Part shown: positions 11,103 through 63,530 of the stretch, piece by piece | How the letters are laid out: each line of letters begins with the position of its first letter | Position numbering within the stretch: the stretch's first letter is position 1 | Assembly (NCBI GenBank): GCA_951804945.1 | Contig: OX638153.1 | Span: 82,522,001-82,586,000 of the forward strand | Direction of reading: 5' to 3' | Length of the DNA stretch: 64,000 nucleotides | Source of the DNA: Podarcis cretensis | Lineage: Eukaryota | Program-made: the position numbers and the translations under genes | Notes under the pieces: generated by a model | What the model saw: only the letters and a program-made list of their open reading frames with translations | What the model was told of the DNA's origin: nothing | The model's database searches: none

Positions 11103-11251
11103 CTATATTATAAATCAGTCATATTTCATGGAGTTAGGAATTAAATGCTTTATTTAAAAAACAAACAAGAATGAATTATAGGAATAAACATTTTGCACAT
11201 TGTACACTGAAGGACAGTGAGTTGGTCCAAGAAGAAAACAGGAACCTGGGT

Positions 11252-11435
11252 CAAAACAAAATAAAAAAATTCCTTCCAGTAGCACCTTAAAGACCAACTA
11301 AGTTAGTTCTTGGTATGAGCTTTCGTGTGCATGCACACTTCTTCAGATACACTGAAACAGAAGTCACCAGACCCTTCTATATAGTGAGAAGGTGGGGAGG
11401 GGTATTACTCAGAAGGGTGGTGGGATTGGGTGATT
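11252..11435 (-). mobile_element. Penelope-like element pseudo-LTR fragment
   Basis: 11-bp direct repeat GGAACCTGGGT (11241-11251 and 11436-11446); near-identical to the arms at 51849-52032; contains a hammerhead motif. Confidence 0.8.
11313..11350 (-). ncRNA. Minimal type I hammerhead ribozyme motif (Penelope-associated)
   Basis: GUAU-CUGAAGA-A-GUGUG(CAUG)CACAC-GAAA-GCUC-AUAC: helix I, conserved core, helix II, palindromic AGCU in place of helix III. Confidence 0.8.
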
Positions 11436-11900
11436 GGAACCTGGGTGTTCCACTTTCAGATCCTGCACTTTTATCTACTATACCACACAAGCTCACACTA
11501 TGCAAAGTCAAAGGTATAACTTATACCAGGTCTTGAATCCTCTTGTAATAAATAGGCTGAATTATTTTTTAATCAGAATAGTGTGAAGTCTAAAAGTGGG
11601 CAATATTACATTAATATCTTAAGTCACAGACCACTTTCCTTTAGAGCCATGTTTGGGCTGGGACACATCAGTAGGCCATGGGTCACTTTCAGGTGATCTC
11701 CTTAAATTGCCTGCTCCAGTCCCTAGCCATGCCAAAGCATTTTGGTTGGACCAATCCCAGCACTAACAACTGTGAGTAAAATTGGCCAGGAGACAAAGAG
11801 TTGGTGGGGGGAGAGGTCTCCCTCATTTGAGGGGAAAGGGCCAAAGGAAGTGTTGAAGGAGACTGAGAGATAAAAAAATAATATTTATTATTATTAGATT

Positions 11901-11998
11901 CAGGTAGGTAGCCGTGTTGGTCTGACGCAGTCGAAATAGTAATAATAGCACCTTAGAGACCAAGTAAGTTTGTTCTGGGTATAAGCTTTCATGTGCAT
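11901..11998 (-). mobile_element. Diverged, truncated Penelope-like fragment
   Basis: GGTAGCCGTGTTGGTCTG...AGCACCTTAGAGACCAA...GTATAAGCTTTC, homologous to 51818-51930. Confidence 0.7.
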
Positions 11999-12011
11999 TT
12001 CGTGGCATTTG

Positions 12012-12308
12012 AAGAGGTCAGCAGTTTGAATCCCCATGACGGGGTGAGCTCCCATTGTTCGGTCCCTGCTCCTGCCAACTTAGCAGTTCGAAAGCTTGTC
12101 AAAGTGCAAGTAGATAAATAGGTACTGCTCTGGTGGGAAGGTAAATGGAATTTCCGTGCACTGCTCTAGTTTCACCAAAAGCGGCTTAGTCATGCTGGCC
12201 ACATGACCCGGAAAACCTGTTTGCAGACAAACGTCAGCTCCCTCGGCCAGTAAAGCGAGATGAGCTCCATAACCCCAGAGTTGTTCGCGACTGGAGTCCT
12301 TTACCTTT
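12012..12308 (+). mobile_element. Sauria SINE, 5'-truncated
   Basis: Body matches the other copies; CCTTTACCTTT tail. Confidence 0.85.
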
Positions 12309-50438: not shown

Positions 50439-51373
50439 TCAAATATATACAAGAAGGTTCTTATCATAGCTGTGACATTGGTTAAAATAAACAATTATCT
50501 GACAAACGTCACTTGATTCTTCTAAACCTTTTTCTAATTCCTTGACTAGCCAATTAGTGATCATCCCATAGCCCAACAAATAAGCAAATTCTTCAGTTAA
50601 TAATCCTTCCTATTAATCTCATATATACCAGAAGTGAAAACTTTTTCTAGAATTAGACATTTACATCCCACTGAAATCAATGGGACAACAACTTAAGTCC
50701 CACTAACAACAGTTAACGTTAGCTGGATTAGTACCTCTATATTGGTAAACAGTTATGTATCTTCCTATACATTACCCAACTTCAAGGAACCCTTTCCCCA
50801 TTATTTCTTCATCCTTTGTATAGGCTAGTTTTTCTTAGTTTTGCAAAAGCAGATATAATCCTGAATGCAATGATAGGCCTGTGATAATTCGATCCTAACA
50901 AGAAAGTATTTTTAGAAAATTAAATATTAGTTGTTTTAAGAAAATCCTGCAGTGCTGGCCTCTCCCTGATCAAATTGATCAGGTCACAGCTACCATCTGT
51001 GATGTCATGGCACTCACTCCCAGTTTTGCTGGAGAGCCTTGCCCCTCAAGCTAAAGAACAGATCACCTCTCATCAATAAAGCCTCTCCTCCTCCCATAGG
51101 AGAGGAGTTGTGAGCAGGAGGCATTTCCCATGTTTAGCAGGGGGCGTAATGCCCCCTGCTTTGCTGTCCCTGCGCCGCACCCCCTGGCAGCCATCCAATC
51201 GGGCGGAGGCAAAATGCAGCCACACCAACGCTTCCACCTCATTGTGATATGTGAGTTTCTGGGAAAACCTCTCATCTTCCACTGAGAGCAGCACTTTTCA
51301 GCCAAACTAAAGATGGAATATGCTCACATGCTATCATCATCATCATCATCATCATCATCATCTACATCTATAG

Positions 51374-51507
51374 CAGCTTTCTCCAATCTGTCTCCCATCA
51401 GATGTTTTGGACTACAACTTTCATCAGTCCCAGCCACCATGGTCTACAGTCCCAGATGATGGGAATTATAGGCCAAAACATACAGGGTATCAGGTTGTGG
51501 AAGCCAG
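51374..51507. mobile_element. hAT (Charlie-like) MITE
   Basis: 8-bp TSD ATCTATAG / ATCTAGAG; TTTTGGACTACAACT / ATTATAGGCCAAAA internal palindrome. Confidence 0.65.
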
Positions 51508-51814
51508 ATCTAGAGAAAGGTTAGTTGTGGCACATTTGAATGACATCTTATAGTCATTCTGAATTCCAGTAGAGTGGGGATAAATATAAGATAGTCATTA
51601 ATTGTTGTTTGTGGCATATATCAGATACAGAAATCTATCCTGGTGGAAAATGTTCGTACATGAAAAACTTTATTTCGTGAACCTGAAAGACTGAAGTTAC
51701 AGCATTCTATTATGGAACAGTGCCTTAAGATTTGAAGGTAAAAAACATGTTGGGCAAGTGACCAAGACTGAAAAGATGGATTCAGAGCAGAGACATTCAA
51801 ACTGTGAAAGACAG

Positions 51815-52030
51815 TTACAGATAGGTAGCCGTGTTGGTCTGCCATAGTCAAAACAAAATAAAAAATTCCTTCCAGTAGCACCTTAAAGACCAACTAAGTT
51901 AGTTCTTGGTATGAGCTTTCGTGTGCATGCACACGTATCTGAAGAAGTGTGCATGCACACGAAAGCTCATACCAAGAACTAACTTAGTTGGTCTTTAAGG
52001 TGCTACTGGAAGGAATTTTTTATTTTGTTT
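51815..52030. mobile_element. Penelope-like insertion with inverted pseudo-LTR halves (perfect 86-bp IR)
   Basis: Arms 51849-51934 and 51947-52032; TSD TGTGAAAGACAG (51803-51814 and 52031-52042). Confidence 0.85.
51935..51972 (+). ncRNA. Minimal hammerhead ribozyme motif, identical to the 11313-11350 copy
   Basis: GTATCTGAAGAAGTGTGCATGCACACGAAAGCTCATAC. Confidence 0.78.
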
Positions 52031-54429
52031 TGTGAAAGACAGCTAACTGATCTTCTCACAAATCCACTGCCAGCGAACAGATCATAAGCAGAGAGTTATC
52101 TTGCAGCCTCATACAGTTTAGGAGTCACTTGATGGGTGACACTGGCCATGAAGACAATTTTAAAATAAAATAAAATCAGATGCTCAAAAACTCATTTGGT
52201 GTCTGTTGGCATGAGTGGACATATCAAGATTTTTTGAAAAACTTTACTGTTATAGGCTGCATAGAAAAGTGAAAGCTTTGACCATATGCTTTATTCATAA
52301 TATAGTTTGGAACAGAATGTGAAGGGACTCAGTTTCAGCCTTACATTAATTCTCAGTTTTATAAAATACTGCTCCTTTCTTCCTGTTTTTATTATTTAAT
52401 GAAACCATAAACTGTTCTCAAAGTTAAAGCTGTTTTGCAGTTCTGGAAGGCATTCAAATAAGAGATTAGAGGCCTATTCAAGTACAGCATGTACAGAACC
52501 ATGTCTGTTATATTCATTTGCTACCACAGACCTCTTAAATATTCTGCTCTGATTTTAATGATTAGTCATCAGTATAACGAAAACTAGTAGAAAAAGAGCC
52601 AACATAATTTTTAAGGAACCATTACAGATTGTATTAGATGAATAATTAAAGTGGTAACATAAACATATTTCATATGGGAAGGCAGATTGTAATTCCACCA
52701 AATAGATCTTTACATACAAACTAAACAAACAAAAAGTTATTAATCAGGAAGAAAACATGCTATAAACAAAAAGGAGAAAGGTTATTGTGTATAGCAGATA
52801 ACTGAAGCTCAGCTTTTAACGTATGGCGTTATATGTACTAGAATATGTAAGTGCTGGATTCTAGATAGAGATCATAGTTCTAAACAGAATTTTAGAAAGC
52901 TGAAGAATTATAAAGATGCTAGCAGATACCTGTTATAAATGTCAGTTCTTATAATCCTGCCTATCAGGCATTTCTTGTTGGCAGCAATTCCCTTTGAGGG
53001 CATAGTAGTCCTGTGTAATAAGGTCATCATTACTGTGGGTGACCCCTCTGACTACCTTTGGCTTAGCTCCTGGGATTTTAGAATCTGAATTCCAAGTTCT
53101 ATGGGCATTCTTATAAACTAACCAAAGGGGTTTTCATAGCACTTTGGTTGAGTGGTAGAAGATCCTTTCATACAAAATGGTGGACAACATCTGCTGCTCA
53201 AAATATATCTATTGAGACTTGCTGAACCAGCTAAAAGGAGCATGATGACATTTTAAAAAACTACGCTGCTCAAGTATCCTTGAATATGCTGCTGGGATTG
53301 TAGAGAAGCACTGAGCCCATCCTCACCTGGGATCCAGTTTGCACCCTTATGGAGGGGCAAAAGAGAGAAAGCTTCAGGACTATCCCATATTTATAACAGC
53401 CTGTTTAAAAGGGCTTTTCACTTTCACTACCTCACCTATGTGTTACTGAACCCCCTTCATGGAATGATGCCAACAGCAGTGTTGACTTTGAAAAAAGAGA
53501 TCTGGGAACATACTAAAATGGAAAATCTGCTATTCTGGCTCATCTTACAGGCATACACAAGGAGGCACAATCATCAGGGGGACATTCAAAGTTCAGGTCT
53601 CACACACTCCCGTTGCATAAATGATTTGCCAATGCTTATGTATAAATACTAATTTTAGATTCTGAATGTTATGAAATAAGACTAGTTGCTAGTTGGCAGG
53701 GTAAAAAGGGAACTTTTATTGTAATCCATAAGGATTTTAGAGTCTTTCTTTTGGTTTTGGTTTAACCTTACTTAGTACAATCTTGCATGTGTCAAATCTT
53801 GGAACCCTGTTCCTTTATTGTCACAACTAGTGCTTTGTCAATGAACAGTGACTCTGACAAAATTAGGGAATGGTCTGGACCACAAACCTAAAGTCCCATT
53901 TAGAAACCTGAGTGACTTTTGATAAGAGAAAACCTTTTGGACTTTTTGTGTGGAAGGGGAAATTATCACTATTCTCTCATACCCCCTTATGAAACGGATA
54001 TTAGCATGTCAGAGAACTAATGCTAATTAGTTCTTCTTCTCCTCCTAGTGAGAATGGTGCCAAGTATGTAAAAGTGTTTCAGTAACTTGCATTGAGCCAT
54101 TTGTATATGCTTTCCCAGACACCCAACATAGCACTAAGGCAATCCTTCAATCAGTGCAAGGATTTCTGATTGTGCAATGCAGCATTCTCCCTATCTCCTT
54201 TGTCCTAAATCTGCTCTAGAGGTTCTTAAAACCCTACATATTTGGGCATGTGGTGAGAGGAGAGCAAGTCCCATTGTGCAAGTGGAAATCTTTGCACTGA
54301 CAAATGCCCTCTGTACGGGAAGTTAGTTGTAGAGAAGCATCATGAGCCAAATCTCCTTTGAAGTGGCCCATTCGGTATTTGTTTTCTTGTTTACCATATT
54401 CTTACTGTATCTTATAAATGATAACGAAA

Positions 54430-60140: not shown

Positions 60141-60404
60141 GTTTTAACAGAATTAAGGAATTTAAGAATATTGGTACAGTTAAATCCTTATACATATTAG
60201 CAAATAGATTATTTTTTCTTCATTAAACTTTTTTGAAAACATGAATTACCATAAAATTATTTAAACAAAAAAGATGCAAGGGGTTGGTAAAGAGAGCTCA
60301 ACAATTATACATACCGATAATACTTTATTTCTTACTTATATCTTCTTTACAGTATTTTTCTTTAAAGGGTTTTGAGATGAAGGAAGAACTCAAAACGTCT
60401 ATAG

Positions 60405-63190: not shown

Positions 63191-63493
63191 AAACAAATCA
63201 CACTGATACCAGGTTTAGACTTAACACTAAGCCAGGGATTGTGGTTTGCTGCTCGCATTCACACTAAGGGATCAAAGGCAGTTTACCACAATATGTAAAC
63301 TGGACCATTGTAGGACAAAGTGTATTGTCAAAAATGTTGTGTCTTTCTAACAGGGTTTGAGCTCTGAGAGATACAAAATTTTATTTTGATACATTTGTGA
63401 TTTTTTAAAAAACCACATTGTTACAAGCACTGAGAAATATCAGAACATTGTCAGCTATGCCTATGACATAGGTTTGAGATGAACAAAGGATAT

Positions 63494-63530
63494 GTTTTGG
63501 TTCCTTCAACAGAGATGTCTTTAATCTCAT
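63494..63530 (-). CDS. IFT80: IFT80 coding exon c1 (MRLKTSLLKEPK+C)
   Basis: Minus strand reads ATG AGA TTA AAG ACA TCT CTG TTG AAG GAA CCA AAA C, followed by the U12 donor ATATCCTTT; matches the IFT80 N-terminus. Confidence 0.95.

Follow-up and report, generated by a model that had tools for sequence, protein, structure and literature searches.

In the window analysed here (the whole stretch of DNA, 64,000 nucleotides), intron 2 of IFT80, a gene transcribed from the minus strand, carries a hairpin-forming insert that lies some 1.4 kb upstream of exon 3. Each arm of the inverted repeat (51849-51934 and 51947-52032) measures 86 nt; the two are 100% complementary and are separated by the 12-nt loop GTATCTGAAGAA, and both arms are bracketed by the TSD TGTGAAAGACAG (51803-51814 and 52031-52042, 12 of 12 positions matching). 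The perfect 86-bp hairpin, the 12-nt loop and the 12-bp TSD described in the first-pass annotation were thus all reproduced. The insert is asymmetric, as its 216 nt are made up of 120 nt in antisense and 96 nt in sense orientation, and the left copy exceeds the arm by a 34-nt tail (51815-51848), which was found on the left side only. The features of the locus are:

51803-51814, no strand: left copy of the TSD, TGTGAAAGACAG, present as a single copy only in contigs of related species
51815-51848, minus strand: AC-rich tail of 34 nt, reading ACTATGGCAGACCAACACGGCTACCTATCTGTAA on the minus strand; it forms the outer (3') end of the copy in antisense orientation
51849-51934, minus strand: left arm, a copy in minus sense that extends from the 5' edge of helix II over GAAA and the predicted cut site into the downstream 64 nt
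51935-51946, plus strand: hairpin loop, identical with the sense copy's 5' leader (5' strand of helix I, GUAU; catalytic box, CUGAAGA; bulged A)
51935-51972, plus strand: complete minimal (dimer-type) hammerhead from the descriptor scan, in order GUAU, CUGAAGA, A, GUGUGCAUGCACAC, GAA, A-GC-U and C, then the cut, then AUAC
51947-52030, plus strand: right arm, a sense copy running from helix II to a tail-less end, ...TTTTGTTT
52031-52042, no strand: right copy of the TSD, identical to the left copy at 12 of 12 positions
51377-51836 and 52004-53007, no strand: contigs of X2 (second sample of the species) over the junctions, 0 mismatches

The inverted repeat extends to 52032 and thereby shares 2 nt (TG) with the TSD. 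An alternative TSD of 15 bp, containing a single mismatch, was considered and rejected, since contigs of related species set the boundary at 12 bp; the extra TTA beside the duplication appears to be templated by the element. RNA folding of the hairpin gave -162.3 kcal/mol, compared with -47.9 +/- 4.2 kcal/mol for shuffled sequences (z = -27), and DNA folding gave -105.9 kcal/mol (z = -28).

The exact empty site was found in three related species (X5, X8 and X14, one contig per species), whose contigs join 51802 directly to 52031 and whose flanks differ by 1.2-1.8%. In the second sample of the same species, both outer junctions are crossed without mismatches and at flank-like depth. None of the listed independent contigs spans the hairpin centre exactly; for the inner junction and the length of the insert, the assembly is the source. 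Because the empty site is exact in all three relatives, the insert derives from one event; it is real and recent, and its arms are identical, with no mutations. The very young age that had been proposed for it was borne out by the empty site. The structure, the TSD, the empty site and the one-sided tail are all direct observations.

The hammerhead motif

The window was scanned with a descriptor built from the published features of min-HHRs (PMC4209133). Exactly two sites were found, 51935-51972 on the plus strand and 11350-11313 on the minus strand, whereas 0.0 matches per simulated window were expected by chance (200 simulations). The scan confirmed the earlier proposal that the loop and the right arm together make up a complete plus-strand hammerhead; its predicted cut lies between 51968 and 51969. 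The left arm starts at helix II and contains neither the CUGANGA box nor the 5' strand of helix I, in agreement with its previous description as a core-less half on the minus strand. Rfam hammerhead models gave no match on 51600-52250 even at E <= 10, and at the gathering score no hammerhead family was reported in the whole 64-kb window; the Rfam matches were limited to generic miRNA-hairpin models, which responded to the long stem. The lack of an Rfam hammerhead match is expected because the motif has no helix III, and the motif is recognisable only by means of the minimal descriptor of the type found in Penelope-like elements (PLEs).

The predicted motif shares with the min-HHRs of metazoan PLEs (Cervera and De la Pena 2014, PMC4209133) a 4-bp helix I, a long helix II, an unpaired base between positions 9 and 10.1, the G10.1-C11.1 pair, and a palindromic 15.2-16.2 (GC) without loop 3, which implies action as a dimer. 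It differs from them (PMC4209133) in that helix II is a perfect 14-nt palindrome, GTGTGCATGCACAC, and in that the predicted motif is buried in the 86-bp duplex. The same hammerhead layout is present in PAc (Poseidon_Ac of Anolis carolinensis; Frangieh et al. 2024, PMC11167929), namely a short helix I, CUGANGA, a bulged base, a long helix II, GAA, A-(2-nt palindrome)-U, C and the cut; however, no sequence similarity to PAc was seen outside the hammerhead core.

In vitro, min-HHRs showed no activity as single units and weak activity as dimers (PMC4209133), and the hammerhead motif of PAc cuts only when the protein is present (PMC11167929). By analogy, cutting at the IFT80 insert would need a partner molecule as well as protein. 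The calculated energy of the hammerhead fold, -7.6 kcal/mol versus -162 kcal/mol for the hairpin, supports the earlier view of a ribozyme locked by its own antisense, as the hammerhead is thermodynamically swamped. The complete hammerhead is antisense to the IFT80 pre-mRNA: the gene lies on the minus strand, and therefore its pre-mRNA holds the antisense of the ribozyme and not the ribozyme. Its transcript contains the core-less half together with this antisense, and in this respect the first-pass annotation needs correcting. Being antisense to IFT80 and sequestered by the hairpin, the putative hammerhead is probably a passenger at this locus.

Other copies of the family and class assignment

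The same module was found elsewhere in the window, and its joints were found in contigs of up to four species:

11252-11435, minus strand: sister insertion of the same subfamily, with 85 nt of upstream promoter-like sequence and a 99-nt sense unit, tail absent
11901-11998, minus strand: old diverged copy of the module with its tail block, 76-89% identity
51836, 51841, 51850, 51862, 51878, 51883, 51888, 51895 and 51899, same-strand: left joint positions among the matches listed, each joined to 51935

The sister copy is flanked by its own 11-bp TSD, ACCCAGGTTCC (11436-11446 and 11241-11251), and it matches the loop plus arm of the hairpin at 98 of 99 positions, with one extra base in a homopolymer, which is the single difference that had been noted before. 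The right arm and the sister copy have the tail-less end in common. In the sister copy, TATATAG precedes the G equivalent to 51935 by 31-33 nt, and a part of the family extends upstream with the same ...GGTGACTTCTGTTTCAGT. The tail block is contiguous with the module in the old copy too (11905-11924). The family is very abundant, and most of its copies differ by 1-10%. The hairpin insert shows that a PLE-type family has been active very recently in this lizard lineage.

The fixed 5' end of the family lies at 51935, where joints and loose ends were observed in four species. Inverted same-strand joints lead to this position from at least nine left positions among the matches listed, in up to four species. 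They were read from contigs of short length (smaller side, 18-27 nt; 15 of 351 rows) and contain 0-2 extra letters and no shared letters among the matches listed. The fixed 5' end and the family-wide variation of the antisense breakpoints are thus directly observed. Since many left breakpoints are combined with one fixed right end, helix II is not a special switch point but merely the place where the left copy stopped. In the first-pass annotation, the inversion point at helix II had been taken as the switch site, and this part of the interpretation was not supported by the breakpoint survey. We also noticed one head-to-tail joint of the unit in the contigs of a relative, from 52018 to 51935 with GTTTTG in between; a tandem or partial-tandem (pLTR) arrangement is absent at the hairpin locus.

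In typical PLEs, an inverted 5'-truncated copy is adjacent to the 5' end, and a tail of 30-40 bp is often present at one end only (PMC8557442). Such tails are optional and depend on the use of two adjacent RT start sites. At the IFT80 locus we found a min-HHR, an inverted 5'-truncated copy lying against a sense copy within one TSD, and a one-sided 34-nt tail. The assignment of the insert as a PLE insertion is based on architecture and motif, and the earlier attribution to a Penelope-type architecture was upheld by the truncated inverted copy, the one-sided tail, the min-HHR and the variable length of the TSD. Published PLEs (PMC8557442) resemble the insert in the truncated inverted copy against the sense 5' end, the one-sided tail, the hammerhead in the terminal repeat, the TSD and the high copy number. 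They differ from it in that only a terminal module of ~100-130 nt is present here, without the ORF, and in that the sense copy is full length up to the putative transcription start, so that the insert is a miniature (PMC8557442). PLEs are mobilised by, or descend from, elements that encode a telomerase-like RT together with a GIY-YIG endonuclease. Pfam gave no match of any kind for 10 of the 17 ORFs of at least 110 aa in the 64-kb window, so that no RT/GIY-YIG coding sequence was found there, and the module was not found in metagenome contigs by exact and degenerate pattern scans. An ORF starting from an ATG in helix II, as in PAc, was rejected, since none of the three frames stays open for more than about 10-17 codons; the region that is the ORF start in PAc (PMC11167929) is thus closed in all three frames here.

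Non-LTR retrozymes were considered as another candidate class. They co-occur with PLEs and are related to their pLTRs (PMC7229834; Li et al. 2026 preprint). Like the family, they are short repeats that bear a hammerhead but no coding sequence (Cervera and De la Pena 2020, PMC7229834; Li et al. 2026 preprint), and a further common trait is the head-to-tail unit junction, of which one was seen in a relative. However, the hairpin locus is not a tandem array and ends away from the cut site of the ribozyme. The candidate was rejected, as retrozymes are tandem repeats bounded by ribozyme cut sites and give rise to circular RNA, whereas the locus is a single composite insert that ends at RT start sites and at the putative TSS and not at the cut site. 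In kind, the locus is ordinary, i.e. a clean young example of the usual insertion mode of PLEs and not a new kind of insertion.

Proposed insertion mechanism and its alternatives

In our opinion, the insert is likely to have arisen by a single retrotransposition of a high-copy, apparently non-coding PLE terminal module, with dual priming and head-to-head joining. The PLE endonuclease would cut the two strands of the IFT80 intron at sites 12 bp from each other, and both 3'-OH ends would prime reverse transcription on element RNA. From the plus-strand end, synthesis may begin at the distal start site, so that the 34-nt tail is included, and copy 120 nt up to the 5' edge of helix II. From the minus-strand end, it may begin at the proximal start site, leaving the tail absent, and copy 96-98 nt up to the 5' end of the RNA at G 51935, which is, as suggested by sequence, probably the transcription start of the pLTR. 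The two cDNAs would then become linked through their 3' ends, in head-to-head orientation and with no homology, either through an end-to-end template jump or in the course of repair, and the product would be a 216-bp insert in which the shared 86 nt form the perfect inverted repeat and the 5' half of the hammerhead forms the loop. What we infer is the order of these events, the use of either two RNAs or one RNA copied in two passes, and the way in which the ends were joined. The arms are identical though most copies of the family differ by 1-10%, and therefore both templates must have come from one source. An 86-nt overlap between the cDNAs is hard for one RNA to template simultaneously, and two RNAs or a tandem transcript have to be assumed.

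The purified PAc protein cuts and elongates the top strand as well as the bottom one, with equal start sites (PMC11167929). In vitro, both target strands prime and the template RNA is uncleaved (PMC11167929). Its two start sites are ~34 nt apart, as they would be here (PMC11167929), and the distance between them equals the length of the 34-nt tail; the tail of PAc itself is likewise ~34 nt long. They lie 55 and 89 nt downstream of the cut, compared with 64 and 94-98 nt in the hairpin insert (PMC11167929), and a TATA-like box tens of nt upstream is common to both (PMC11167929). There is no homology at the start sites of PAc (PMC11167929), whereas the hairpin insert has 2-nt overlaps between target and element. 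The predicted cut between 51968 and 51969 coincides with the end of neither arm, and both arms read through it; this would indicate an uncleaved RNA template, which agrees with the in vitro substrate of PAc. The insert may therefore be a natural footprint of the in vitro behaviour of the Anolis PLE, with both strands cleaved and extended, starts ~34 nt apart and an uncleaved template. It is unusually clean: the exact empty site exists in three relatives, mutations are absent, and what would be both alternative RT start sites were used in one event.

A related process is LINE-1 twin priming, reportedly described by Ostertag and Kazazian in 2001, in which the second cut strand is said to prime on the RNA and not on the first cDNA and to yield an inverted 5' part within one TSD. 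The two cDNAs reportedly correspond to neighbouring stretches of one RNA that for the most part do not overlap, with priming by A-rich microhomology. In contrast, both cDNAs would here copy the same 86 nt, from two defined internal sites.

Alternatively, the inversion may be explained by a template switch or snap-back at the palindromic helix II during the synthesis of a single cDNA, with the nascent strand being copied, which is the model of the first-pass annotation. The antisense copy does end exactly at the 5' edge of the palindrome GTGTGCATGCACAC, and such a palindrome can fold in nascent cDNA and free a 3' end. However, a self-copy cannot hold sequence that is missing from the first arm, and each arm contains element sequence missing from the other: the left one has the unique tail (51815-51848) and the right one the unique 12-nt leader (51935-51946). 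Because of this, neither arm was copied from the other, and both must have been copied from RNA. Pairing of the palindrome would moreover give a loop-less palindrome and not two palindromes 12 nt apart, the ...GATAC 3' end has no complementarity to the sequence on which it would prime, and the joints to 51935 begin at many positions with no preference for helix II among the matches listed. The asymmetric content of the arms largely refutes this model, and we consider it quite unlikely. Two separate insertions, in which a later, oppositely oriented copy landed exactly against the 5' end of an earlier one, are conceivable in a family that is extremely abundant and recently active (the sister copy is 99% identical). 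They are nevertheless very improbable, as one 12-bp TSD surrounds the whole composite, the inner junction has no second duplication, both halves are jointly absent in all three relatives, and the head-to-head joint with the fixed 51935 end recurs family-wide, pointing to a one-step product.

The long inverted repeats and the TSD could also suggest that the hairpin unit itself is mobile, either as a MITE-like fold-back element moved at the DNA level or as a palindromic RNA copied whole. Here, however, the arms are not terminal, as the left arm is internal to the 34-nt tail, and the module also occurs in single orientation with its own 11-bp TSD. The TSD lengths of 11 and 12 bp fit target-primed insertion and not a transposase, and the inner breakpoints differ between copies, so that the fold-backs are independent products. 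A MITE or fold-back DNA transposon was rejected on account of the internal left arm and the two TSD lengths, and a mobile hairpin in general would come as a great surprise. Finally, an inverted duplication could be created when reads are assembled over a high-copy repeat; tandem and inverted PLE structures are known to trouble assemblies (PMC8557442), and it is the hairpin centre for which an exact independent contig is lacking among those listed. Such an artefact is extremely unlikely, given that the contigs of the second sample cross both outer junctions mismatch-free with the 3' ends of the element pointing outward on both sides, that the TSD is perfect and the empty site of the relatives exact to the base, and that the structure is the usual product of the family. 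Dual priming on element RNA with head-to-head joining remains our preferred explanation.

Possible consequences for IFT80

With the insert, the IFT80 intron gains an 86-bp perfect duplex. It is conceivable, though rather unlikely in our view, that a symmetric, dimeric integration complex of PLEs regularly leaves such head-to-head inserts behind and that those in transcribed introns give rise to long, perfect hairpin RNAs, which would be diced into small RNAs against the still active family. If so, the insertion mechanism of PLEs would seed their own silencing, and the IFT80 copy would be an ideal test case, being young, perfect and located within a broadly expressed cilia gene.

The inverted insert and its empty site

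The inverted repeat at 51849-51934 and 51947-52032 was found to consist of two arms of 86 nt each, 100% complementary to each other, with a spacer of 12 nt, GTATCTGAAGAA, and a perfect 12-bp direct repeat, TGTGAAAGACAG, flanked it on both sides, with copies at 51803-51814 and 52031-52042; the perfect hairpin with its short loop and target site duplication (TSD), as described in the first-pass annotation, was thus borne out. We also noticed 34 nt of extra element sequence (51815-51848) between the left duplication and the left arm, on the left side only, which makes the insert asymmetric: its 216 nt comprise a 120-nt copy in minus orientation and a 96-nt copy in plus orientation. The predicted RNA fold had an energy of -162.3 kcal/mol, in comparison to -47.9 +/- 4.2 in shuffled sequences (z = -27), and the DNA fold one of -105.9 kcal/mol (z = -28). 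A single long stem would be expected from a transcript of either strand.

Logan contigs of four sequencing runs, one from the same species (X2) and three from relatives (X5, X8 and X14), were compared over 50600-53300. In 3/3 related species, one contig joined window position 51802 directly to 52031, indicating that the site is uninterrupted there, to the exact base, and holds the 12-mer once.

Empty-site joints in the three relatives (positions within the contig)
X5, record 17: 3756/3757
X8, record 24: 2264/2265
X14, record 3: 2628/2629

Flank divergence from the window was 1.24%, 1.40% and 1.77% in these relatives. The insertion is younger than the splits from all three, which, if common reptile rates are assumed, occurred about a few million years ago; the identity of the arms alone gave an age bound of roughly 8-19 My. 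In X2, a 506-nt contig over 51377-51836 crossed the left junction and a 1004-nt contig over 52004-53007 the right one, both with 0 mismatches and flank-like depth, in a sample that may be the same individual as the assembly. As the 3' end of the element faces outward on both sides, these contigs independently support the head-to-head arrangement. None of the contigs listed runs exactly across the hairpin centre, which leaves the assembly as the basis for the inner junction. The insertion was confirmed as real and, as had been proposed, young.

The hammerhead motif and the repeat family

The Rfam search returned no hammerhead at the hairpin region even at E <= 10, and none at the gathering score in the whole window; the matches at the hairpin were miRNA-precursor models, responding to the stem. 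The minimal hammerhead (min-HHR) is the type described for metazoan Penelope-like elements (PLEs) by Cervera and De la Pena (PMC4209133), and its features were all matched point by point at 51935-51972.

Hammerhead features in the hairpin
Helix I: 4 bp, GUAU/AUAC
Catalytic box: CUGAAGA
Unpaired A: between positions 9 and 10.1
Helix II: long, closed by G10.1-C11.1
GAA, then A-GC-U: palindromic 15.2-16.2, loop 3 absent
C17: predicted cut 51968|51969

A descriptor written for this analysis from the published min-HHR features matched the window only twice, at 51935-51972 (+) and 11350-11313 (-), with 0 matches in 200 simulated windows. This agrees with the complete plus-strand hammerhead proposed for the loop and right arm; the core-less half assigned to the left arm was likewise found, since the minus-oriented copy starts at helix II, without the catalytic box. 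The 41-nt motif alone folded at -7.6 kcal/mol, not better than shuffles. In earlier studies, min-HHRs were expected to be active solely as dimers, with barely detectable activity in vitro (PMC4209133), and the hammerhead of the Anolis PLE required the element's own protein (Frangieh et al. 2024, PMC11167929).

The unit, a short PLE-type terminal repeat, has a sister copy at 11252-11350 (-) with 98/99 identity, which starts with GTATCTGAAGAA and ends in ...TTTTGTTTTG like that of the hairpin; the claimed one-base homopolymer difference between the two was correct. It lies in an insertion of its own:

11241-11446 including the TSD, minus strand: sister insertion of 184 nt, flanked by an 11-bp TSD of its own, ACCCAGGTTCC

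In this insertion the hammerhead is preceded by 85 nt, in which TATATAG lies 31-33 nt ahead of the G equivalent to 51935, and by its sequence the upstream part looks like the core promoter and transcription start of the PLE terminal repeat. In an old copy at 11901-11998, the tail block ...CAGACCAACACGGCTACC... was contiguous with the unit; a Sauria-type tRNA-derived SINE at 12000-12150 adjoins this copy and marks the genome as that of a squamate. In the element bins of 4/4 species, the summed contig depth, which is not a copy number, exceeded that of the flanks by four to five orders of magnitude, and the PLE-type family is clearly very abundant and common to this lizard group. The A/T homopolymer of the unit is of variable length in the family: an extra base accounted for ~13-37% of the summed depth at 51859 and for 4-28% at 52015, and it is by such a base that the 11252 copy departs from the hairpin arms. 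All three frames of the unit, as read from the sequence, were closed within about 10-17 codons; the window has 17 ORFs of 110 aa or more, and the 10 of them that were scanned gave no Pfam match. Together these results suggest that the inserted piece is a non-coding terminal module. In X8, a head-to-tail joint of the short tail-less unit (52018 to 51935, with GTTTTG between) points to tandem module copies elsewhere in the genome of that relative. Two other high-copy repeats lie close beside the hairpin, at 51328-51509 and 51055-51145; their summed contig depth exceeded the flank depth by a factor of hundreds in 4/4 species, and the loose-end consensus was ...CCTTCCCCAACCTGGTGCCCTC.

Comparison with known elements and mode of insertion

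The hairpin locus fits the description of PLE insertions by Craig et al. (2021, PMC8557442), in which a 5'-truncated inverted copy typically abuts the 5' end and a tail of 30-40 bp is often confined to one side, in line with the earlier remark that inverted partial copies are a known Penelope pattern, and is in kind an ordinary Penelope-type head-to-head insertion. Purified PAc, the Poseidon element of Anolis carolinensis, cuts and extends both target strands, with uncleaved RNA as substrate; reverse transcription begins at two adjacent internal sites, equal on both strands, whose spacing sets a ~34-nt tail (Frangieh et al. 2024, PMC11167929). The PAc consensus (File S1: CTGAGGA-T-helix II-GAAA-CG-TC|AGG, with a TATA-like box upstream; PMC11167929) has a hammerhead layout like that of our unit. 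The PAc tail covers the stretch from ~55 to 89 nt downstream of the cut, whereas in the hairpin insert the tail-less end lies 64 nt and the tailed end 94-98 nt past the predicted cut. All three readable outer junctions, a small sample, showed a 2-nt overlap of target and element (TG 52031-52032, AC 11250-11251 and AG 51813-51814, the last conditional on the family continuing ...CTGTAACTAGAAC past the tail), while 'no homology' was reported for the PAc start sites (PMC11167929).

The first-pass annotation had proposed template switching at the ribozyme stem, with the helix II palindrome as the inversion point. However, the left arm alone carries the 34-nt tail and the right arm alone the 12-nt leader, so neither arm was copied from the other and both were copied from RNA; a snap-back copy was rejected on the same grounds, as tail and leader cannot come from self-copying. 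The opposite orientation of the arms requires primers on opposite target strands. In the simplest reading, a single event, a 12-bp staggered cut would leave two 3'-OH ends that both prime reverse transcription, one cDNA starting at the distal and one at the proximal site, and the two cDNA ends would then be joined. Neither arm stops at the predicted ribozyme cut site and both continue past it, indicating that the templates were uncleaved. Three further origins of the hairpin were rejected as well: two insertions in succession, since one 12-bp TSD encloses the whole composite; a fold-back unit that moves as such, since the tail lies outside the left arm and the inner breakpoints differ between copies; and an artefact of assembly, since the X2 contigs cross both outer junctions without mismatch and the empty site of the relatives is exact.

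Among the best-supported joints of the family, same-strand joints led to the single right end 51935 from nine left positions (51836, 51841, 51850, 51862, 51878, 51883, 51888, 51895 and 51899), with 0-2 letters inserted (in many cases GT, G or T), no letters shared across the joint, and presence in up to four species. These joints agree with dual-strand priming: in them the sense copy regularly extends to one and the same 5' end, and the point at which the antisense copy stops is variable. Helix II is therefore not a required switch point, and the joints lend no support to a special role of its palindrome, which is where this antisense copy chanced to stop, 12 nt short of the end. According to the loose ends at 51935, part of the family extends further upstream, with the sequence ...GGTGACTTCTGTTTCAGT. 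Together with the TATA box, which longer copies have at -31 to -33, this leads us to infer that transcription of the repeat most likely starts at the fixed end.

Position within the host gene

The host gene is IFT80, transcribed from the minus strand. At 63530 (-), MRLKTSLLKEPK begins with an ATG, and a U12-type donor, ATATCCTT, follows at 63493 (-), right after codon 12.

63493-60141, minus strand: U12-type AT-AC intron, ending in AC at 60141, with TTCCTTAAT ~12 nt before the terminal AC
60140 to about 59920, minus strand: exon 2, best PDB match IFT80 residues 15-43 (E = 2.9e-4)
about 50410-50298, minus strand: exon 3, matching IFT80 residues 85-122 (E = 2e-9)

Further exons lie at lower coordinates. 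The hairpin falls within the intron of ~9.5 kb that separates exon 2 from exon 3, with ~1.4 kb left to the start of exon 3, and the assignment to IFT80 made earlier stood. The complete hammerhead, being on the plus strand, is antisense to the pre-mRNA. The IFT80 pre-mRNA carries the core-less half and the complement of the ribozyme, and would all the same be predicted to form the full 86-bp duplex.
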